Source: Macrostomum hystrix (Eukaryota > Animalia > Platyhelminthes). Taken from it: a stretch of DNA of 64,000 nucleotides. The stretch spans positions 124,001 to 188,000 of the forward strand of contig CATNEN010000007.1 of the NCBI GenBank assembly GCA_950097015.1. Reading direction: 5' to 3'. The notes under the pieces were generated by a model, which was given only the letters and a program-made list of their open reading frames with translations, did not search any database and was not told where the DNA came from. A program made the translations under genes and the position numbers. Positions 84-57,390 of the stretch are shown here, in pieces. Every line of letters starts with the position of its first letter. The first letter of the stretch is position 1.

Positions 84-12799
<12,716 letters not shown>

Positions 12800-36746: not shown

Positions 36747-37469
36747 TTGCGCAGGGACGGCAGGGACAAAATTGACTTTTGCGCTGAATCGGAATCACTA
36801 ATAATTTATTTTCTTAGCAACTTTTGTCTCTTCACCAATTATTAGATTAGCTTGTGAGCCTTTCAATGCACAACTATTGGTTTGCCATTGTCTTAGAAAT
36901 TAGGCAAATGAAGTCGGTTTTATTTAAACGAAAGCATTTCGGCATCAGTTTAAATATTCGGTTAAAGTTAGGTTATAGAGTCGAAAGAAAAATGTGACAA
37001 GCGAAAGAAATCGTTCGACAAAGAACAAAATTACAGTAGACGCAGTTTTAAATCTATTTTCTGTTCTTGTTCTTTAAACTTTTCTCATAGAAAGAGCAAT
37101 ATAAATGAAAACAATATACATTTTTATATTATAGCCTTTTAGCGTCTAGCGCCGATTTGAAACTGTTGTATAAAGTCAGTTTTTAATCGATCTTTTCTGT
37201 TTTCAAGCTTTTTAATCTAAAATTTTCTTTCCTACTTTAAAAAAATTAGATTTACTTGTACTTAGGACTCTTACCCAAGCACACAGTAGTCAATCTTTCT
37301 AGCAATGGCTTCTTAATCGAATTTCATCGTAAATTTGAATAAAATTCCTGAAATCTACTTTCAGAAATAGCAAATATTTTCACTTTATGGGCGACAAGTA
37401 AGAATAAAAACAACTTTATCAAAGTTTGAGTTCTCATTGTGTTTAGATTTCTGCAGAGCATCTGAATCA

Positions 37470-39618
37470 CACTGCATCACACTATGCATCACACTCTGCA
37501 TCACACTATGCATCACACTATGCATCACACTATGCATCACACTATGCATCACACTATGCATCACACTCTGCATCACACTCTGCATCACAGTATGCATCAC
37601 ACTATGCATCACACTATGCATCACACTATGCATCACACTCTGCATCACACTCTGCATCACAGTATGCATCACACTATGCATCACACTATGCATCACACTC
37701 TGCATCACACTCTGCATCACACTCTGCATCACACTCTGCATCACACTATGCATCACACTATGCATCACACTCTGCATCACACTCTGCATCACACTCTGCA
37801 TCACACTCTGCATCACACTATGCATCACACTCTGCATCACACTCTGCATCACACTCTGCATCATACTCTGCATCATACTTTGCATCACACTCTGCATCAC
37901 ACTCTGCATCACACTCTGCATCATACTCTGCATCACACTCTGCATCACACTATGCATCACACTCTGCATCACACTCTGCATCACACTCTGCATCACACTC
38001 TGCATCACACTCTGCATCACACTCTGCATCACACTATGCATCACACTCTGCATCACACTCTGCATCACACTCTGCATCACACTCTGCATCACACTCTGCA
38101 TCACACTCTGCATCACACTCTGCATCACACTCTGCATCACACTCTGCATCACACTCTACATCACACTCTGCATCACACTCTGCATCATACTCTGCATCAC
38201 ACTCTGCATCACACTCTGCATCACACTCTGCATCACACTCTGCATCACACTCTGCATCACACTCTGCATCACACTCTGCATCACACTATGCATCACACTC
38301 TGCATCACACTCTGCATCACACTCTGCATCACACTCTGCATCACACTCTGCATCACACTCTGCATCACACTCTGCATCACACTCTGCATCACACTCTGCA
38401 TCACACTCTGCATCACACTCTGCATCATACTCTGCATCACACTCTGCATCACACTCTGCATCACACTCTGCATCACACTCTGCATCACACTCTGCATCAC
38501 ACTCTGCATCACACTCTGCATCACACTATGCATCACACTCTGCATCACACTCTGCATCACACTCTGCATCACACTCTGCATCACACTCTGCATCACACTA
38601 TGCATCACACTCTGCATCACACTCTGCATCACACTCTGCATCACACTCTGCATCATACTCTGCATCACACTATGCATCACACTATGCATCACACTCTGCA
38701 TCACTCTATGCATCATACTCTGCATCACACTCTGCATCACACTCTGCATCACACTATGCATCACACTCTGCATCACACTCTGCATCACACTATGCATCAC
38801 ACTCTGCATCACACTCTGCATCACACTATGCATCACACTCTGCATCACACTCTGCATCACACTATGCATCACACTATGCATCACACTATGCATCACACTA
38901 TGCATCACACTCTGCATCACACTCTGAATCTCATTCTGCATCACACTCTGCATCACACTCTGCATCACACTCTGCATCACACTCTGAATCTCATTCTGCA
39001 TCACACTCTGCATCACACTCTGCATCACACTCTGAATCTCATTCTGCATCACACTCTGCATCACACTCTGCATCACAGTATGCATCACACTATGCATCAC
39101 ACTCTGCATCACACTCTGAATCTCATTCTGCATCACACTCTGCATCACACTCTGCATCACACTCTGCATCACACTCTGATCTCATTCTGCATCACACTCT
39201 GCATCACACTCTGCATCACACTCTGCATCACACTCTGAATCTCATTCTGCATCACACTCTGCATCACACTCTGCATCACACTCTGCATCACACTCTGCAT
39301 CACACTCTGCATCACACTCTGCATCACACTCTGCATCACAGTATGCATCACACTCTGCATCACACTCTGAATCTCATTCTGCATCACACTCTGCATCACA
39401 CTCTGCATCACACTCTGCATCACACTCTGAATCTCATTCTGCATCACACTCTGCATCACACTCTGCATCACACTCTGCATCACAGTATGCATCACACTCT
39501 GAATCTCATTCTGCATCACACTCTGCATCACACTCTGCATCACACTCTGCATCACACTCTGCATCACACTCTGCATCATACTCTGCATCACACTCTGAAT
39601 CTCATTCTGCATCACACC
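37470..39618. repeat. 12-bp minisatellite (tgcatcacactc), about 175 copies
   Basis: Directly visible; begins about 5 nt after the caspase stop codon. Confidence 0.98.
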
Positions 39619-39623
39619 TGTCC

Positions 39624-42600
39624 TCAGACAGCCCAACTCGGGTCAAGTAAAACCTTCTTCGACAGTTGCGATCGCATCTCTGGCACCGAATGATAAAACA
39701 GCTGATTGTTGCCAGGTCGGCCAGCTCGAACTGGATTCTCCTTCACTCGCCGATTCACCTGGGTCATGATGTCTAGCAGGTGTTCTCGGCGATATTCTCT
39801 CTCTAGCACCGCGCACAGCGTCTGGATGAAGACGGAGCCGCGGCCGGGGTCCCTGTAGGCTGGCCCGGTCTCCGTGTTGGCATAGCAGAACAGGAAGTCA
39901 CTCTCTGTAGGACAGAACAGCGGATCTTTTACCGGGGCTCTGACGGGCACTGAGTCCGTGCTCACAGACGCCTGGCGAAGCTCAGCGGCCTCCGATCGAC
40001 CGCCGCGGCAGGCTTGGACAAAAAATATCTTCGGCTTGTGCTCCAAGCCACTGCAAATGTTGGCCTGCAGTCTGGCGGCCAGGTACCTGCCGATTGATTA
40101 ACCAATCAATCTGTTCAATCAGTTGATCAATCGATCAATAAGAAATTAAGAAGTCAATCAATTCAAGGAATATAACTTTTTATTAAAAAAAATCTATCAA
40201 TGCTCAACTTCTCAATGAATTATTGACCTTTAAATGAAATCCAATTAATAATTATTCAAATTGCGAGTATGCATCTATCTAACAATTGATAAGTTAGGCA
40301 ATCTATTTATCAATTGATGTATGGGGATGACTGTCGGAGCTAAAACGCTCGCTCGAAGGGTCCCAGAACTCGAGTCCGCTACGAGGCAACATTTATTTGT
40401 GGCGCAGCCGCGTTGAGGGCTAGAGTTCTTGGAATGCAATTCGCGCCCATGAGAGCCAATTCCCGATGAGATGAGCCAATGAGATCAGCCAGCCAATGAG
40501 ATTAGCCAGCCAATGGTATCAGCCAGCCAATCAGATTAGCCAGCCAATTGGAGCAGCCAGCCAATCAGATTAGCCAGCCAATGAGATTAGCCAGCCAATC
40601 AGATTAGCCAGCCAATTGGAGCAGCCAGCCAATCAGATTAGCCATGCAGTCGATGAGATCAGGCAGCTAATTAAAAGAGCCGCTTACCTAATCTCTAGCG
40701 GTCTGCCATCGCAGCCGTAGATTGAGTCGGCGGTGCCATGAGCCATGAGGAAGCAGACAAAGCAGCCGTGTCGATTAAGCTCGGCTTCGTTGTTGGCCAG
40801 CTCGTGAATGCAGTTGAGCATGCCATTCACGCTAAGATCTTGCTTCACAACCACCCGAAAGCGCAGCTTCTCAAACAATAGCTGAATTCGTTCGACATCA
40901 AATTCGGAGCCGTCGCGACACTCGAACTTGGAGCTGGCGGTGTACTTGTTGATGTTGATTATCAGGCAGAAGCCTTGCGGGTCTGTAACGCGGTAAAAAT
41001 CTTCTGGGCGGTACCTGGAGGGGAGTTTAAAAGTAAATAAGCTTTTGTTGGGTTTGCGGTTGCACTTGTATGCTTTAGACCTCGTTTACATTCTATGTTA
41101 TCTTACTCCCTTTCTCTCGTGCGCTGTCTCACTCTAGCAGTGTTTACTCACCGCATATGCACCTGCGTGTCAGTGCATGATTTAGCCCTCAACCTATCAA
41201 ATCGTTTCAATAATCAATGTACATTCATCGACCAGTCTGTGCATAATAAATAGATCGCAAGTTTTGGCTCAACAGTTCGTTTGTCAGCTAACATGACCTG
41301 GCTAGTGTCATTCAGCTTGCAGCTTTTATTAATCAAGCATTACTGCCACTCTCTTCCAAACTGTACCAAACTATTAAACTCTACCAAACTCTACCAAACT
41401 CTACCAAACTCTACCAAACTCTACCAAACTCTACCAAACTCTACCAAACTCTACCAAACTCTACCAAACTCTACCAAACTCTACCAAACTCTACCAACAT
41501 TAAACTCTACCAAACTCTACCAAACTCTACCAAACTCTACCAAACTCTACCAAACTCTACCAAACTCTACCAAACTCTACCAAACTCTACCAAACTCTAC
41601 CAAACTCTACCAAACTCTATCAAACCCCGCCAAACTCTACCAAACCACGCCAGACTCTACCAAACCCCGCAAAACTCTACCAAACCCCGCCAAACTCTAC
41701 AAAAACCACACCAAACTCTACCAAACCCCGCCAAACTCTACCAAACCCCGCCAACTCTACCAAACCCCGCCAAACTCTACCAAACCCCGCCAAACTCTAC
41801 AAAAACCACACCAAACTCTACCAAACCCCGCCAAACTCTACCAAACCCCGCCAAACTCTATCAAACCCCGCCAAACTCTACCAAACCACGCCAGACTCTA
41901 CCAAACCCCGCAAAACTCTACCAAACCCCGCCAAACTCTACAAAAACCACACCAAACTCTACCAAACCCCGCCAAACTCTACCAAACCCCGCCAAACTCT
42001 ACCAAACCCCGCCAAACTCTACAAAAACCACACCAAACTCTACCAAACCCCGCCAAACTCTACCAAACCCCGCCAAACTCTACCAAACCCCGCCAAACTC
42101 TACAAAACCCCGCCAAACTCTACAAAAACCACACCAAACTCTACCAAACCCCGCCAAACTCTACCAAACCCCGCCAAACTCTACCAAACCCCGCCAAACT
42201 CTACCAAACCCCGCCAAACTCTACCAAACCCCGCCAAACTCTACCGAACCCCGCCAAACTCTACCAAACCCCGCCAAACTCTACCAAACCCCGCCAAACT
42301 CTACCAAACCCCGCCAAACTCTACAAAACCCCGCCAAACTCTACAAAAACCACACCAAACTCTACCAAACCCCGCAAAACTCTACCAAACCCCGCCAAAC
42401 TCTACAAAAACCACACCAAACTGTACCAAACCCCCGTCAAACTCTACCAAACTCTCCCAAACTCTTATGTCACACAGGCCCCTCACCGGATTTTTGACCC
42501 TGTATCGTCCTCGTCATCCATGCCGGTAGTTGAATTCGGTACATAGTTAACTGGCTCCTGTTCAAATCTATGAATGAGGATTTAAGAATTGAGGATTAAA

Positions 42601-45600
42601 ACCTAGGTTAATGAGCTAGGCAACTCACGCAAACGCTCACTCGTTTTGTTCGTCAGACGTGACGTCGTCGGCAATGGGCAAGATTTTTTGGCTAAAAAAA
42701 AGATTTTTACGATTAAGTTCCACGTTGAGTAAGTCTTTGAGCTTTATTAGTTTCAAAACAAGAGAATAGCTTTTTTGGATCCTCTTACTCATTGCCAACA
42801 TCGAGGCTGAAGAAGTCCTTGCCTTTGTAGCTGGAAATTTTTTGCGGAAATAGAGGCTAAAGCGTTAAAATTTGTAACTTCGAGAAGCATTCATAGAAAA
42901 AATCTATCAATCTGTTTTAAAGCGTTAAAACAGTTCTCAGTTTTGAAAATTTTTGAAAAGTTTCAACAGTTCTTGAAAAGGTCTGCATTTTTTCAAACAG
43001 TACTTTAGTTTTTCTTAAACTTTTCTCAAATTTTTATCCATCTGTTCTCAAACAGTTCTCAATATGTTATCAACAGCTGTCCTCAAATTTCTCTGAACCT
43101 GTTCTCAAACTGTTCTCAAACTGTTCTTAAACTTCTCGGCACCTCTGCAGCAGGGCCAGCGTGTCGGAGCTGCCACTTTTAGCTGCGGCACTCTCGGCTG
43201 TCTGGCCCTTGGCGTCGCGCAGCGTCCAATTGGCCCCCAGCTCCAGCAGAGCCCTGGCTGTCTCGTCTTTGCCAGCCGACGCGGCTTCCATAAGCGGCGT
43301 CCCACCGTCCTGATCGCTAGCGTTGACGAACGCCCCAACGTTAATCAGCAGCCGGACAGCCTCGGTGGCGCCGGCCGAAGCTGCCGCGTGCAGCACCGTC
43401 CACGCCGCTGCGCTGCCCGACGTCGCGTCGGCGCCCAGTTCGTCGATTAGTCGAGGCAGGCTGTCGAGGCAGGCCGGCGACTCGGCGCTGCGCCGAACCA
43501 AGCAGCTCAGGCAGGTGTGAAACCACTGGGCGTGCGGCCAGTCGCAGTTTAACCGGGTGGCGACTCGCAGGAATTCGGCAGGTGGCGCGTAATTTGCCAG
43601 CCGCATCAGGTCTTTGGCCTCCTGCTTCTCCTAAAAGAGGCAACAGCCAAGAAATGAAACTGAAAGAAGCTTTTCCTACTGGAAGAAGATTTCACCCATA
43701 AAATCTATATTTTACCTGTCAAATAAAGATTTGCACGACGGTTCTCAAAATGTTCTCAAACTTCTCTTAACCAGTTTTCCATCTGTTCTCAACCAATTTT
43801 CAATATGTTCTCAAACTGCTCTCAAACTCTTCTCAAACTGTTCTCAAAGTTCTCAACCAGTTTTTAATCTGTCATATTAGGACTTCATATGTTTAAAAGA
43901 CTGTTGAACGCTTTTTAAAAGAAGATTTCGCCTTCTGTTACTCTGCAGACTCACCTTGAATGTCAAGCCGCGAATTTCTCTGAAAGAAGAAAGTTCAGAG
44001 ATTTGAGAAGGATGTAAAACGAAAGTAGTTCAACACGTGAATTCAAGAAGCCCCGTGAAGCGCTCACATTCGAATGACCTCAGCCAGCTCGGCGTGTCCC
44101 GCCGACTCGGCCAAGTCCGCCGCCGAGCAGCCACTTCGATCTTTTGCTCCTAGCAGCGCCTTCCTCTTCTCCCGCCTGCGCCGGTGCCTGAGCAGGTGCA
44201 GCAGGTGGCGCGCGCAGGCCCACTGGCCGGCCATCGCCGCCTCCATCAGCGGCGTTCGACCGGCGAGATTGGCGGCAAACTTCACAGGGCCGCTGGCGGC
44301 ATCATCAAAGGGCAGCGCAGCCAATAGGCGCAGGTTGCCGGCACGGGCGGCCAAATGAGCGGCGTTGTCGCCGGTGGCTTTGTCGGCGGACCTCGGGCTG
44401 GTGCCGCGTTCCAGAAGCAGTTCGACGCATTTGAAATAGCGCCAGCTGGTGCTGACGGCCGAGGCTGCCAGCATCAGCGGACTGCGGCCTTCGGCTCGAG
44501 TGCGGCATCGGCAGTTGGCAGGTAGGGCCAGGCGTCTCAGCTGAGCATAGTTCTCATCGACTGTGAGCTGGCCGAGGCGTTTTGCCATCTTCGTGAATGA
44601 TTTCAAAGGGTCGAAGGCGAAATTGCTGTTAATGTCATTATGCCAGATTTGATTCCAATAGCTACAGTTCGCCCAGCTGTAAAATGAGGTTGCAGCGGTC
44701 CTGAGTTCGAATCCATTATGAAGTCGTTACATCTGGAGGGTCACAATCTACGGCTCAGAGACTGACTTTCAATAAGAAGTAAAGTACGTGTCAGTTTTTT
44801 ACAAAGAAACATTTGTACTTTATCAACGACCATTACATACAGACCACTGGCCTGTTAAGCTGAGCAATGTCCAATTCGACGGACCACTGACCTGTTAGAC
44901 AGACCACTGACCTGTTAGACAGACCACTGACCTGTTAGACAGACCACTGACCTGTTAGACAGACCACTGACCTGTTAAGACAGACTTCTGATCTGTTAGA
45001 CAGACCACTGATCTGTTAGACAAACCACAGATCTGTTAGACAGACCACTGACCTGTTAGACAGACCCCTAATCTATTAGACAGACTACTGATCTGTTAGA
45101 CAGACCTCTGATCTGTTAGACAAACCACTGATCTGATAGACAAACCACTGATCTGTTAGACAAACCACTGACCTGTTAGACAAACCACTGATCTGTTAGA
45201 CAAACCACTGATCTGTTAGACAGACCACGGATCTGTTAGACAGACCACTGACCTGTTAGACAGACCACTGACCTGTTAGACAGACCACTGACCTGTTAGA
45301 CAGACCCCTAATCTATTAGACAGACTACTGATCTGTTAGACAGACCTCTGATCTGTTAGACAAACCACTGATCTGATAGAAAAAACCACTGATCTGTTAG
45401 ACAAACCACTGATCTGTTAGACAAACCACTGACCTGTTAGACAAACCACTGATCTGTTAGACAAACCACTGATCTGTTAGACAGACCACGGATCTGTTAG
45501 ACAGACCACTGACCTGTTAGACAGACCACTGACCTGTTAGACAGACCACTGACCTGTTAGACAGACCCCTAATCTATTAGACAGACTACTGATCTGTTAG

Positions 45601-47325
45601 ACAGACCCCTAATCTGTTAGACAAACCACAGATCTGTTAGAGAGACCACTGATCTGTTAGACAAACCACAGATCTGTTAGACAGAGCGATGACCTGTTAG
45701 AGAGAGTACCAGTTTTTTCAGTTTTTCAGTAACAAAAACACTGACTGCACTACTTAAACAATTTAGTAGTAGCTTTCTTATTTTAAGCAAGTAGCATTTG
45801 ATTCCCAAAGCAGTGTGGCTTTGCCCTCTTGCACTTTCTGGTCGCAGACACTTCTCTATATTGCTAATATATTTTTTATTTTACTTCTTCATTGGCAGCA
45901 AAGGGCTGAGCAATCAGGGCCTCAGTATGTCTAAGTTCGCTCACTGTTTAAGCCTGCGTGAGCCAATTTCCTGCAGCCCAAAGACTGAGGCAGCTGAGAT
46001 GTGCATGTCGGACAGTGTATCGATATGGTGAAATGATTTTCTCCCTCACTTAGAAGAGCAGGAGCAGAACAACTCCTGATTGCCTTCAAGGCCTCTACTA
46101 ATGTCCCCGTCTGCCATGTCCTTTGTAGGCGCCTGAAATGCAATTCTCCCTAATTCAGTGTTCGATCCCAATTTTTTTTGTCGGTCGTCGCAATCTGGTT
46201 TTGGGTGGCCAGCGAGTTGGGGACTTTTGTCCCATTCTGCTCCTCTTTTTTGACAGGCGAATGCGCAAATGTTGATGCACTTTTGTATGTGTTAGAAATG
46301 GTCGATAAGTAATTTAATAGTATCGATCACGAGTCGAAAGTACGCGAATTTTTTTTAAACAGATTTGGCGGAAGTTTTAAAACCTTACTAAACTCAAGAT
46401 CGATATTAATAGACTCAAGAAAATTATTCAGTTCTGCATGTTGGAAATTTGACACATGCCGCTGCGATCACATCTGTTAGATAGATTCGTTACCTGTTAG
46501 ACAGATTCGTTACCTGTTAGACAGATTCATTACCTGTTAGACAGATTCGTTACCTGTTAGACAGATTCGTTACCTGTTAGACAGATTCGTTACCTGTTAG
46601 ACAGATTCGTTACCTGTTAGACAGATTCGTTACCTGTTAGACAGACCACTGACTTGTTAGACATGGGAACTGATAGACAGGGAACTGAGTGTTAAACAAG
46701 GAACTGACCTTTTAGACAGGGAATTGACCTGTTAGACATGGGAACTGACCTTTTAGACAGGAAACGGACCTGTTAGACATGTCTAACTGACCTGTTAGAC
46801 ATGGGAACTGTCCTGTTAGACATGGGAACTGTCCTGTTAGACATGGGAACTGTCCTGTTAGACATAGGAACCAACCCGTTAGTTCCGGGAACTGACCTGT
46901 TAGACATGGGAACTGACCTGTTAGACATGGGAACTGACCTGTTAGACATGGGAACTGACGTGTTAGACATGGGAACTGACGTGTTAGACATGGGAACTGA
47001 CCTGTTAGACATGGGAACTGACCTGTTAGACATGGGAACTGACCTGTTAGACATGGGAAATGACCTGTTAGACATGGGAACTGACGTGTTAGACATGGGA
47101 ACTGACCTGTTAGACATGGGAACTGACCTGTTAGACATGGGAACTGACCTGTTAGACATGGGAACTGACCTGTTAGACTTGGTATCAGCAAGCAGCAGAA
47201 AAGTAATGAAGCCTACAAAAGTAGTTATAAAATCTACCAAAATGTCACATAAAACACACCTTTGTGCCAGAATCTTCCCAGGCTTGCTGTTCGACTTGCA
47301 AATATTCTGCATTGAAGGACGCCAT
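39624..47325 (-). CDS. Ankyrin-repeat/caspase fusion protein model, 727 aa (exons 47325-47260, 46132-46050, 44676-44068, 43979-43955, 43630-43143, 42830-42789, 42567-42487, 41014-40688, 40086-39624)
   Basis: Caspase: GFCLIINI, RDGSEFD, FLMAHG, KPKIFFVQACRG, SDFLFCYA, GSVFIQ (high confidence). Ankyrin: GRSPLMLAA, GDNAAHLAA, GRTPLMEAA, WTVLHAAA, GGTPLMEAA (high confidence). The 9 exons total 2184 nt with every phase matching. Weakest links are donor AG|GTGCCG at 43142 and the two 5' exons. Confidence 0.7.
40485..40645. repeat. About 17-bp CCAAT-containing repeat (cagccaatcagattagc)
   Basis: About 9 copies in caspase intron. Confidence 0.85.
41350..42455. repeat. 10-bp repeat (ctaccaaact) evolving into 20-bp units (ctaccaaaccccgccaaact)
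   Basis: Directly visible. Confidence 0.95.
43040..43860. repeat. Degenerate 11-bp repeat (tgttctcaaac) in both introns flanking exon 43630-43143 (about 43040-43130 and 43740-43860)
   Basis: Same motif visible in both introns. Confidence 0.7.
44875..45705. repeat. 20-bp minisatellite (agaccactgacctgttagac)
   Basis: About 40 copies. Confidence 0.96.
46470..47178. repeat. Adjacent 20-bp (acagattcgttacctgttag) and 21-bp (atgggaactgacctgttagac) minisatellites
   Basis: Both share core cctgttagac with the 44875 array. Confidence 0.95.
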
Positions 47326-56833: not shown

Positions 56834-57322
56834 CTACGAAGGTTCTGTAATGCGAGAAGTGGAGCTCGGAACAGACCGAGTTTGATCTCCGGAGTTTAGG
56901 CAGACAGCCAGACAGCAGGTTACGCTACAAGCTGTTAGCATAGCCTGAATTAATTCATTGCAGACTACAGCATCGCGAACTGTCAGTCTGGCTTTGCCGA
57001 GCCAGTCAATCTGAGCCTTCAGTCGAGGCCATCCGGTCGGCTTTCTCGTTCCCGCACGCTGGATAGCTACGGATTTGAGCTGCAACAGCAGACGGAGCCG
57101 CTGGTTCAGCAGCCAGTTCAGCAGCAGCGCTTTAGCCGTCATTATTTTCATCAGCAGAGCAGAGCAGGTGGTGGCAGCGGTGGCATCGGGCGAGCAGTCT
57201 GGACTGATAATCGACCCTCGAGCCTGTCTCAGCGAAGCATTCAAACGCTGCTGCGGCAAAGAGGGGCGCCAACGACCACCGGGTCGTTTGCGTCGCAGAG
57301 TGTTGATGACTTTGGCCGACTA
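56834..57322 (-). CDS. Putative exon of an unidentified protein (SAKVINTLRRKRPGG...ELIQAMLTAC...)
   Basis: About 160-codon open frame in GC-richer DNA between arrays; no family recognised. Confidence 0.35.
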
Positions 57323-57390
57323 GTGACAATGTCCGCCTGCAGCGATTGCGAAGCTGTGAGTTTTGGGATTTACATAAAAGCGTTTCCGGT

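Follow-up and report, generated by a model that had tools for sequence, protein, structure and literature searches.

An expressed gene of the flatworm Macrostomum hystrix joins an ankyrin-repeat module to a caspase domain

Introduction

In Macrostomum hystrix, a member of a free-living flatworm genus, ankyrin-repeat and caspase reading frames lie side by side on one strand, which raises the question of whether they belong to a single gene or to two neighbours and, if to one, where such a combination came from. The frames occupy positions 39624 to 47325 of the window, a 64,000-nt stretch of contig CATNEN010000007.1 (assembly GCA_950097015.1, positions 124,001 to 188,000 of the forward strand) whose own numbering is used throughout. 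A preliminary description made from the letters alone had recognised four minus-strand ORFs, two of them ankyrin and two caspase, and had spliced them into one frame of 727 aa. All four ORFs were present, matching Ank_2 (two ORFs) and the two halves of Peptidase_C14. The locus is one nine-exon gene for a 687-aa Ank-caspase zymogen in three parts, laid out as follows.

Exon 1, coding part: 47260..47325, minus strand; ATG at 47325; 22 codons, MASFNAEYLQVEQQAWEDSGTK
Exon 2, ankyrin block 1: 44068..44588, minus strand; 521 nt; 173 whole codons; Ank_2, E 1.6e-18
Exon 3, microexon (..EIRGLTFK): 43955..43979, minus strand; 25 nt; restores the frame between the ankyrin blocks
Exon 4, ankyrin block 2: 43143..43630, minus strand; 488 nt; Ank_2, E 2.1e-23; in contigs
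Intron 4, the gap between ankyrin and caspase parts: 42831..43142, minus strand; 312 nt; 31% GC; skipped in 4/4 runs
Exon 5: 42789..42830, minus strand; 42 nt, YKGKDFFSLDVGN; joints in 4 runs
Exon 6: 42641..42691, minus strand; 51 nt, QKILPIADDVTSDEQN; joints 42789/42691 and 42641/42567 in 4 runs
Exon 7, acidic linker: 42487..42567, minus strand; 81 nt, FEQEPVNYVPNSTTGMDDEDDTGSKI; in contigs; poorly conserved
Exon 8, N-terminal part of caspase p20: 40688..41014, minus strand; Peptidase_C14 positions 2-97, E 1.6e-17
Exon 9, rest of p20 and p10: 39624..40086, minus strand; Peptidase_C14 positions 107-232, E 2e-22

Results and Discussion

Gene structure and expression

The expression data are contigs from four public runs, all of one study, and carry no information on transcript ends, strand or abundance; the runs are not recorded as RNA, but we take them to be so because their contigs lack introns. 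Intron-less contigs cross joints 47260/44588, 44068/43979, 43955/43630, 43143/42830, 42789/42691, 42641/42567 and 42487/41014, all with GT/AG borders, and a single 1602-nt contig spans caspase, linker and both ankyrin blocks. For joint 40688/40086 the placement rests on GT/AG borders, on a TAA in frame immediately 5' of the acceptor, on the length of the contig and on collinear homology. The resulting model has 2061 coding nt, and its frame is open over all 687 codons.

At the 5' end, exon 1 was located by a loose-end consensus present in all four runs, with a unique match at 47267-47296, and its donor GT lies at 47259-47258. Contigs in all runs cover 44068-44595; the seven nucleotides 47260-47266 differ from 44589-44595 by one letter, which accounts for over-extension by the aligner at the exon 1/2 joint. 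At least ∼30 nt of 5' UTR precede the coding part, and an in-frame TAA stands 12 nt upstream of the ATG. As the contigs splice exon 1 (47325-47260) straight to 44588, there is no room for the additional 5' coding exons of the 727-aa model, and these found no support.

The microexon (43979-43955), the 42- and 81-nt exons and the phase-2 donor after 43143 (CAG AG/GTGCCG) all have GT/AG borders, an open frame and joints in contigs; an in-frame 51-nt exon (42691-42641) lying between the 42- and 81-nt exons had, however, been missed. The microexon has a strong acceptor and the donor AAG/GTGAGT, and its joints were recovered in three runs (44068/43979) and four runs (43955/43630). The first base of exon 5 is polymorphic, so that the split codon reads Ser or Arg. 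A loose end past 42485 maps to 40983-41012, the start of exon 8.

The encoded protein comprises an ankyrin solenoid of ∼360 aa (about ten helical hairpins), an acidic, disordered linker of ∼60 aa encoded by the three small exons, and a caspase domain of ∼260 aa. A candidate site for pro-domain cleavage within the linker is the DD[IV] motif of exon 6 (Asp codons 42669-42664). The M. lignano orthologue does not conserve the MDDEDDTG stretch of exon 7, originally put forward as offering cleavage sites, and the first Asp of that stretch is itself polymorphic (Asp/Ala at 42517, in 2/4 runs).

Orthologues in Macrostomum lignano

The nearest match was M. lignano PAA56209, an Ank+C14 protein that is collinear with all four large exons at 73-81% identity; no protein closer than the M. 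lignano entries was found among 1.8 billion cluster representatives. The orthologues PAA56209, PAA82384 and PAA90489 (BOX15_Mlig000705g2 / Mlig009621g1-g2) are automatic, unnamed models, entered in UniProt as 'ANK_REP_REGION domain-containing protein', and no paper describing them was found in the literature. They share the Ank + Peptidase_C14 architecture, with 73% identity over both ankyrin exons (73.6% for exon 2 against PAA56209/PAA82384) and 77-81% over the two caspase exons (78-85%, depending on the method, for exon 9). They differ in a longer N-terminus (the ankyrin block is preceded by 44 aa rather than 22) and in linker length (33 or 62 aa versus 58 here).

Exon sizes and phases, and the same fused ORF, are conserved at the M. 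lignano locus (L002), which has the microexon (7674-7697), the same donor position (CAG AG/gtgatg), a 42-nt counterpart of exon 5 with the same phases and a 54-nt counterpart of exon 6 containing ESDDI. The counterpart of exon 7 is a 90-nt exon missing from models P0151-P0153. The GK.FF peptide of exon 5 is kept in the older M. lignano paralogues P0172, P0018 and P0058, although identity in their ankyrin modules is only 36-41%. The DD motif of exon 6 is aligned in P0018 (QTDDI), and in P0172 an RDDT stands later in the linker.

One gene, two genes or a second isoform

The ankyrin and caspase parts are supported as one expressed gene, and not two neighbours, because the disputed splice 43143/42830 occurs in intron-less contigs of all four runs, M. 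lignano has the same fused ORF and phases, and paralogues keep GK.FF. The central claim of the preliminary description, a single ORF joining an ankyrin pro-domain to a catalytically complete caspase, is thus borne out, as is its remark on the short gap, a 312-nt intron without AATAAA. Two of the checks that it had proposed agree: contigs are spliced across 43143/42830 in 4/4 runs, and the domain and flatworm homology searches returned Ank_2 + Peptidase_C14 and the same architecture in M. lignano.

Were there two adjacent genes, an ankyrin-only gene would end at the TAA at 43127 and a ∼275-aa executioner caspase with a short pro-domain would start from the MDDEDD ATG (42521), the fused contigs being rare read-through, conjoined transcripts or assembly chimeras. 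Exon 7 does contain that in-frame ATG, from which the caspase would be of caspase-3/7 size, the donor at 43142 (GTGCCG) is weak, and unspliced, low-depth contigs cover both borders of intron 4 (43070-43172 and 42803-42888). Those contigs come from run X1 only, however, whereas the spliced joint was found in four independently assembled runs at a depth equal to that of the flanking exons. No contig with exon 7 stops short of exons 6 and 5 on its upstream side, and each run has one or more that reach the ankyrin exon; no loose end indicating a foreign leader was reported in the contigs at 42830, 42691 or 42567. M. lignano retains the uninterrupted ORF, the position of the donor and the phases of the exons, GK.FF is conserved beyond the joint even in paralogues with diverged ankyrin modules, and the caspase domain falls outside the executioner group. 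We therefore regard two genes as highly improbable. A short-pro-domain executioner of the caspase-3/7 type, as a candidate identity for the caspase, was ruled against by the upstream course of the exon 7 contigs and by tree placement.

A further proposal, compatible with the one-gene reading, is that retention of intron 4 yields a functional ankyrin-only isoform acting as decoy or adaptor; translation would continue to ..RCREV and stop at the TAA at 43129-43127, with a predicted product of 371 aa. The X1 contig 43070-43172 runs over donor and stop (depth 3.4 versus 8.5-9.3 for the exons), and M. lignano has stand-alone proteins with the same module (P0176, P0178). Yet the retained form was seen in one of the four runs, a contig that pre-mRNA explains equally well; no run covers the central part of the intron (42956-43036), and the minus strand of the intron (43142-42831) contains no poly(A) hexamer (AATAAA, ATTAAA or similar). 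Such a functional isoform seems unlikely, while a minor caspase-only or ankyrin-only form may still accompany the fused mRNA.

Taken together, the locus is an expressed Ank-caspase gene, and the reading that we hold very probable is that its product is an initiator-type zymogen, built with an ankyrin cassette shuffled within the lineage and serving as an output arm of a modular family.

The caspase domain

With the caspases (Peptidase_C14, subfamily C14A) as reference class, the two caspase exons scored 64.4 and 80.4 bits against PF00656 (gathering cut-off 21.4) and took in positions 2-97 and 107-232 of the 233-position profile. Both catalytic motifs are intact, as first described: ECRDGSEFD with the S1 Arg and LMAHG (40749-40735) with the catalytic His lie in exon 8, and exon 9 supplies QACRG (40016-40002; Cys 40010-40008), the inter-subunit loop VSTD/S (Asp 39956-39954) and, in p10, AYRD and GSVF before the stop TGA at 39626-39624. 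In caspase-7 and caspase-3 the aligned counterparts of LMAHG and QACRG are SHG and QACRG. In the S1 pocket, ECRDGSE stands against RNGTD, AYRD against SWRS and GSVF against GSWF, with the Q of QACRG kept; alignment to caspase-7 and to an ancestral caspase-3/6/7 found all catalytic and S1 residues present. VSTD/S aligns with IQAD/S of caspase-7, within a loop predicted to be disordered. Asp-directed activity and maturation by a cut in this loop are predicted, with the conserved Asp of VSTD/S as the candidate site.

At a threshold of E 0.01, no exon matched a DED, CARD or other death-fold domain. In the PDB, both caspase exons best matched caspase-7 and caspase-3 by sequence. In trees, the caspase domain lay outside the executioner-like outgroup, in the half that holds DED-type and cnidarian caspase-8-like proteins. 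Its grouping with DED caspases received 96% SH-aLRT in a first quick tree and 80% in a second, and the careful tree does not have it among its starred sets. An AlphaFold2 model, made for the M. lignano orthologue P0151 and not for the present protein, gave a confident solenoid (41-400), disordered segments (404-426 and 561-602) and a confident caspase fold, with a pTM of 0.54.

A Macrostomum ankyrin cassette

The ankyrin module recurs in M. lignano with other partners. Block 1 is 46-49% identical to Ank-only and Ank-kinase proteins (E 1e-32 to 1e-37, collinear). Ank + STE/MAP3K-like kinases such as Mlig017273, Mlig013011 and Mlig015152 share a collinear two-block module of ∼350 aa at 36-49% identity, but their effector is a kinase (best PDB matches MAP3K2 and ASK1), which replaces the caspase or stands beside it. 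In PAA47029 (Mlig018903g3), an Ank-kinase-caspase, the module is followed by a K.FF peptide and a clade B caspase (see below) at the end, and in P0058 the kinase is located in the linker. On the module tree the caspase label required at least three changes, and caspase-bearing modules were monophyletic in 0/200 bootstrap trees, in a comparison that includes automatic M. lignano predictions, some visibly over-merged (P0160, P0164, P0177).

This distribution points to a Macrostomum-specific cassette of ∼350 aa that would be coupled to STE/MAP3K-like kinases, to a kinase plus a caspase, or to nothing; the present gene would be one of several output arms in a modular family of signalling proteins. 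Domain shuffling inside the lineage is the most likely source of the gene, rather than inheritance from parasite ANK caspases. More speculatively, and with rather long odds in our judgement, the cassette might be a lineage-specific equivalent of the death fold, a common module for recruitment or sensing through which one upstream signal reaches interchangeable outputs: a caspase (as here), an STE/MAP3K-like kinase, both together, a stand-alone adaptor or a Cys-to-Gly pseudo-caspase decoy (cf. cFLIP). If true, Macrostomum would possess a self-contained cell-death or immune network based on ankyrin repeats in place of DD, DED and CARD, evolved through repeated effector swapping.

Relationship to parasite ANK caspases

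The preliminary description had called the architecture unusual, which holds among animals generally; it is not new, since 'ANK caspases' have already been published for flatworms (PMC11463336). They were described there as specific to parasitic flatworms, and a passage of that paper traces their first notice, in Schistosoma, to Lee et al. 2014 (as cited in PMC11463336). An Ank-caspase in free-living Macrostomum contradicts this stated restriction to parasites.

Descent from one fusion is a separate matter. A single Ank-caspase could have arisen in an early rhabditophoran ancestor, with loss in planarians and divergence of the pro-domains beyond recognition. Free ML trees separate the present gene, in a Macrostomum-specific clade B (98/83), from the parasite clade, yet a single clade of clade B, M. 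lignano P0149 and Neodermata was not rejected by the AU test (p 0.371, delta lnL 10.0). P0149, itself Ank+C14, joins the parasite clade (99/90), and the M. lignano kinase-caspase, in clade B here, was sister to ANK caspases in PMC11463336. By BLASTP the pro-domain was not recognisably homologous to those of the described ANK caspases: both ankyrin exons matched cestode and monogenean pro-domains at E 0.012-7 (block 1: 0.05-7), and ANKRD17/50 more strongly (E 1e-5 to 1e-11). Cestode and monogenean pro-domains are only 30% identical to each other over 100 aa, and pro-domain similarity could have decayed over the distance to the parasites. The module is nevertheless no closer to the parasite and P0149 pro-domains than to generic ANKRD17/50 proteins, while reaching 36-49% identity with kinase-linked and stand-alone modules of Macrostomum, and clade B also contains caspases with Ras/Roc and LRAT pro-domains, which implies pro-domain turnover there. 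We consider a single origin a reasonable minority view, and favour assembly within the lineage.

Proposed mechanism

Architecture and homology suggest an apical (initiator-type) caspase, its ankyrin module standing in for a DED or CARD pro-domain. By binding a partner or scaffold, the module would pair two zymogens, whereupon Asp-directed cuts would mature the protease, the candidate site being the conserved VSTD/S of the inter-subunit loop; a second cut, probably at the conserved DD[IV] of the linker, would free the ankyrin module. The protein may be a sensor-activated protease, as had been proposed.

The solenoid might instead be an intramolecular inhibitor or a localisation tether on an executioner-like pre-formed dimer, held inactive until an upstream protease cuts at DD[IV] and VSTD. 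Designed ankyrin-repeat proteins, in work cited in a passage of PMC11463336, can bind and inhibit caspases, the best PDB matches are the executioners caspase-7 and caspase-3, and conserved Asp sites occur in both disordered loops. Against this, the caspase domain does not group with executioner-type proteins in trees, the module's occurrence on kinases or alone is better explained by a shared binding function, and the single-chain P0151 model (at the pTM given above) lends docking no support. We hold this alternative to be doubtful, and retain the initiator-type reading.

Comparison with known systems

Caspase-8/10 and cnidarian caspase-8-like proteins, which the caspase domain adjoined in quick trees, likewise have a long pro-domain, QACRG and an inter-subunit Asp; unlike caspase-8/10, the present protein has no DED or other death-fold domain. 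The principle of joining a caspase to a binding or sensing module that is neither CARD nor DED also appears in the DSRM caspases of oyster (PMC7836458) and in annelid caspases with kinase, TIR, ROC and Z-binding pro-domains (PMC11463336); these differ in modules and lineages, and none has the Macrostomum ankyrin cassette. The ANK caspases of Neodermata (e.g. Taenia solium KAL5963490, Echinococcus granulosus 'Caspase-8' and Cichlidogyrus KAL3319427) form their own clade (100/100), whose nearest Macrostomum relative is the other gene, P0149. With the present protein they share an N-terminal ankyrin pro-domain and a C-terminal active caspase (here predicted) on one chain, a similar size (700-800 aa), the same phylum and a place in one broad region of the caspase tree, away from the executioners.

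Gene model and transcript evidence

Four long minus-strand ORFs were found in the interval, of which two were identified as Ank_2 (E 1.6e-18 and 2.1e-23) and the other two as the N- and C-terminal halves of Peptidase_C14 (positions 2-97 and 107-232 of 233) in a Pfam domain search, bearing out the two ankyrin and two caspase ORFs of the preliminary description. The supported model, checked for reading frame exon by exon, comprises 9 exons and 2061 coding nt, and encodes 687 aa with no in-frame stops. The GT/AG borders previously proposed for a 25-nt microexon, 42-nt and 81-nt exons and a phase-2 donor after 43143 were confirmed on the minus strand; the 727-aa frame proposed with them was not, a 51-nt exon having been overlooked and the extra 5' coding exons implied by that length being unsupported.

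Exons of the supported gene model
47325-47260, minus strand, exon 1, coding part
44588-44068, minus strand, exon 2, ankyrin block 1
43979-43955, minus strand, exon 3, 25-nt microexon
43630-43143, minus strand, exon 4, ankyrin block 2
42830-42789, minus strand, exon 5, 42 nt
42691-42641, minus strand, exon 6, 51 nt
42567-42487, minus strand, exon 7, 81 nt (acceptor position set by contigs)
41014-40688, minus strand, exon 8, first caspase exon
40086-39624, minus strand, exon 9, 153-aa caspase exon

The RNA evidence consists throughout of contigs from one study, in whose four public runs 36-41% of the words sampled from 39600-44700 were present, approximately the exonic fraction of that interval. 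Contigs were aligned to 42470-44870, a stretch chosen to avoid long tandem arrays. Every intron in this stretch was missing from contigs, which therefore derive from spliced RNA, though the runs are not recorded as RNA; low-depth unspliced contigs were present at both borders of intron 4 (42831-43142) in run X1 only. The joints 44068|43979, 43955|43630, 42789|42691 and 42641|42567 were all seen, as was the ankyrin-to-caspase splice 43143|42830, for which a junction check had been suggested and which was recovered in the contigs of all four runs. Among these contigs, one 1602 nt long ran from 840 nt of caspase-side sequence through all three exons of the linker, ankyrin block 2 and the microexon into the beginning of block 1. 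Loose contig ends past 42485 mapped to 40983-41012, at the beginning of the first caspase exon, and those past 44595 mapped uniquely to 47267-47296; the overlap at 44595 is only apparent, reflecting over-extension by the aligner across 7 nt with one letter different. As described earlier for the space between the ankyrin and caspase parts, intron 4 contains no poly(A) hexamer. The locus is thus one expressed gene with a fused ORF.

An in-frame ATG (MDDEDD...) inside the 81-nt exon 7 made two separate genes, an ankyrin-only gene and a stand-alone caspase of ~275 aa, a serious rival to this single gene. Against it stand the 43143|42830 joint in all four runs and the GK.FF peptide directly after that splice, whose retention in paralogues with an ankyrin module only 36-41% identical is hard to reconcile with separate genes; we consider the two-gene reading highly improbable. 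An additional ankyrin-only isoform would be compatible with the fused gene and seems decidedly unlikely. Spliced-leader trans-splicing of an operon at 42830 was rejected, as 43143 was joined to 42830 in every run's contigs; the lack of any reported foreign loose end at the linker acceptors in the contigs of the four runs also counts against it. No family matched anywhere in the window in an Rfam scan, which thus gave no hint of a spliced leader or another RNA. Besides this gene, the window contains neither an ankyrin-caspase nor an ankyrin-kinase gene.

Two coding polymorphisms among the four runs were observed in the linker: one at 42830, the first base of exon 5, where a split codon reads Ser or Arg (runs X1 and X2), and one at 42517 (GAT>GCT), which replaces the first Asp in MDDEDD by Ala (runs X2 and X3). 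Separate minisatellite arrays fill several introns and the DNA directly after the stop codon, the longest reaching 1.1 kb within the gene and >2 kb downstream of it. A CTAACAG-like core is common to several of the units, and weaker ~11-nt repeats of the GTTTGAGAACA type occur in introns 3 and 4.

Minisatellite arrays in and near the gene
37437-39640, period 12 nt
40474-40644, period 17/34 nt
41351-42465, period 20 nt
44878-45705, period 20 nt
46474-47182, period 20-21 nt

Orthologues in Macrostomum lignano

With the 153-aa caspase exon as query, a word-based search of proteins, in which a length filter screens out full-length relatives, yielded one 205-aa fragment; its source contig (L001, 923 nt) holds caspase sequence only and says nothing on architecture. 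A length-unbiased HMMER search with the same query identified M. lignano PAA56209, a 723-aa protein with 85% identity and a C-terminal caspase domain. PAA56209 and its cluster mates combine Ank and Peptidase_C14, are named just 'hypothetical protein' or 'ANK_REP_REGION domain-containing protein', and align collinearly, at 73-81% identity, with each of the four large exons, several of the M. lignano models in these comparisons being automatic predictions. The M. lignano orthologue locus (L002) shares with our gene the microexon, the CAG AG|gt donor and a 42-nt exon; the 51-nt exon corresponds there to one of 54 nt, the DD[IV] motif being common to both, and the 81-nt exon to one of 90 nt. The window therefore belongs to a Macrostomum species other than M. 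lignano, and the fused frame is conserved between the two species.

Approximately 10 kb upstream of the gene, 57190-57351 (minus strand) matches the first 52-54 residues of M. lignano A0A1I8IAM6 (P0155, 760 aa) at 67% identity, so the upstream neighbour is syntenic between the species; this UniProt model is probably a merger of two genes. The M. lignano orthologue has as its neighbour, on the opposite strand (L002, 17008-19058), a phosphagen kinase of the arginine/creatine-kinase type (ATP-gua_Ptrans).

Caspase domain and predicted structure

Caspase-7, caspase-3 and an ancestral effector caspase served as references for an alignment of the caspase exons. MAHG, with the catalytic His, and QACRG were both kept, in agreement with the intact motifs of the preliminary description, as were the Arg residues of p20 (ECRDGSE) and p10 (AYRD), and GSVF. 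Judged from these residues, the catalytic apparatus is intact. The Asp of VSTD|S aligns with the caspase-7 inter-subunit site IQAD|S.

An AlphaFold2 model of the orthologue P0151 (mean pLDDT 76) was used as a stand-in for the window protein. It predicts disorder in residues 1-40, a continuous helical solenoid of ~10 hairpins (41-400), a disordered linker (404-426) and then a confident caspase fold interrupted by a disordered loop (561-602). The conserved DD[IV] and VSTD sites are located in the last two disordered segments, the linker and the loop.

The ankyrin module

Ankyrin block 1 is 73.6% identical to its orthologue and 46-49% identical to M. lignano Ank-only and Ank-kinase proteins (E 1e-32 to 1e-37), the latter match being collinear across both ankyrin blocks. 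Caspase-linked and kinase-linked copies were interleaved in a tree of the module, of which only the interleaving of labels was used, as its base is unstable (P0161 branch of 9 changes/site, with a long-branch warning). The linked kinase is an STE-group member whose best solved matches are MAP3K2 and ASK1; in PAA47029 it lies within the linker, following the conserved K.FF peptide. The ankyrin cassette is thus common to caspases and kinases in Macrostomum. One M. lignano paralogue, P0172 (Mlig016858g2), carries the same cassette and a full caspase fold with QAGRG replacing QACRG. This protein is probably a pseudo-caspase that has lost catalysis, and might act as a cFLIP-like decoy.

Phylogenetic placement

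ANK caspases have been described as a monophyletic group, sister to DED caspases (PMC11463336, Genome Biol Evol 2024; preprint 10.1101/2023.12.11.571055), first seen in Schistosoma according to that paper's citation of Lee et al. 2014. The same study regards them as an innovation connected with parasitism and suggests that an ankyrin-binding activator was selected as parasitism emerged; in M. lignano it recognises only a caspase with a kinase pro-domain, placed as the sister of the ANK group, and in flatworms 'no other' unusual pro-domain (PMC11463336). In the literature searched, no other paper used the ANK-caspase terms, and ankyrin was unmentioned in amphioxus and bivalve caspase surveys.

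Trees were built from the caspase domains of search matches, with the two window caspase exons entered as separate partial rows. These exons grouped with PAA56209 (100/99) inside a Macrostomum-specific clade (clade B; 98/83), which also held several Ank-C14 proteins, the Ank-kinase-C14 protein PAA47029, and Ras/Roc-C14 and LRAT-C14 proteins; pro-domain turnover is high within this expansion. The Ras/Roc GTPase pro-domain caspases are M. lignano P0009 and P0170 (757 and 1015 aa), and the LRAT/NlpC-type one is M. lignano P0020 (495 aa). Cestode and monogenean ANK caspases formed their own clade (100/100), to which the nearest rows were M. lignano PAA94436 (P0149) and one fragment (99/90). P0149, a second kind of Ank-caspase (Ank and Peptidase_C14, 599 aa), is named 'Caspase-8' in UniProt. 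Its position in the tree makes it a likely orthologue, in a free-living animal, of the ANK caspases called 'parasite-specific', and this protein alone contradicts their published restriction to parasites.

Proposed function and origin

We propose that the protein would be an initiator-type zymogen in which the ankyrin module takes over the recruiting or regulatory role of a death-fold domain, with maturation at the conserved Asp sites. An autoinhibitory, executioner-like mode appears unlikely by comparison with this initiator role. The cassette was most likely joined to the caspase through domain shuffling within the Macrostomum lineage. Descent shared with the parasite ANK caspases is a possibility that we do not favour: an AU test of a single clade for the two groups gave p 0.371, so that a single origin is neither demonstrated nor rejected, yet ankyrin block 1 matched the parasite pro-domains at only E 0.05-7, weaker than generic ANKRD17/50.

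The gain is incremental rather than fundamental, as the architecture is published and the orthologues are unnamed in public databases. The locus adds a transcript-backed free-living case, evidence that it is part of a separate Macrostomum expansion, and a link through the ankyrin cassette to kinases. M. lignano is used for knock-down work; if knock-down is feasible, the function of the ankyrin pro-domain is testable there, which is hard in tapeworms or flukes. The cassette common to caspases and MAP3K-like kinases suggests a route to finding partners.

The single ankyrin-caspase gene of the preliminary description therefore stands in its main reading, on the contigs and the conserved ORF, with its exon model corrected. 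The architecture that it called unusual is already published; its occurrence in Macrostomum is not, in the literature searched. The published link to parasitism is removed by an ankyrin-caspase with transcript support in a free-living Macrostomum, as it is by P0149, and the architecture is either older than parasitism or has arisen more than once in flatworms.
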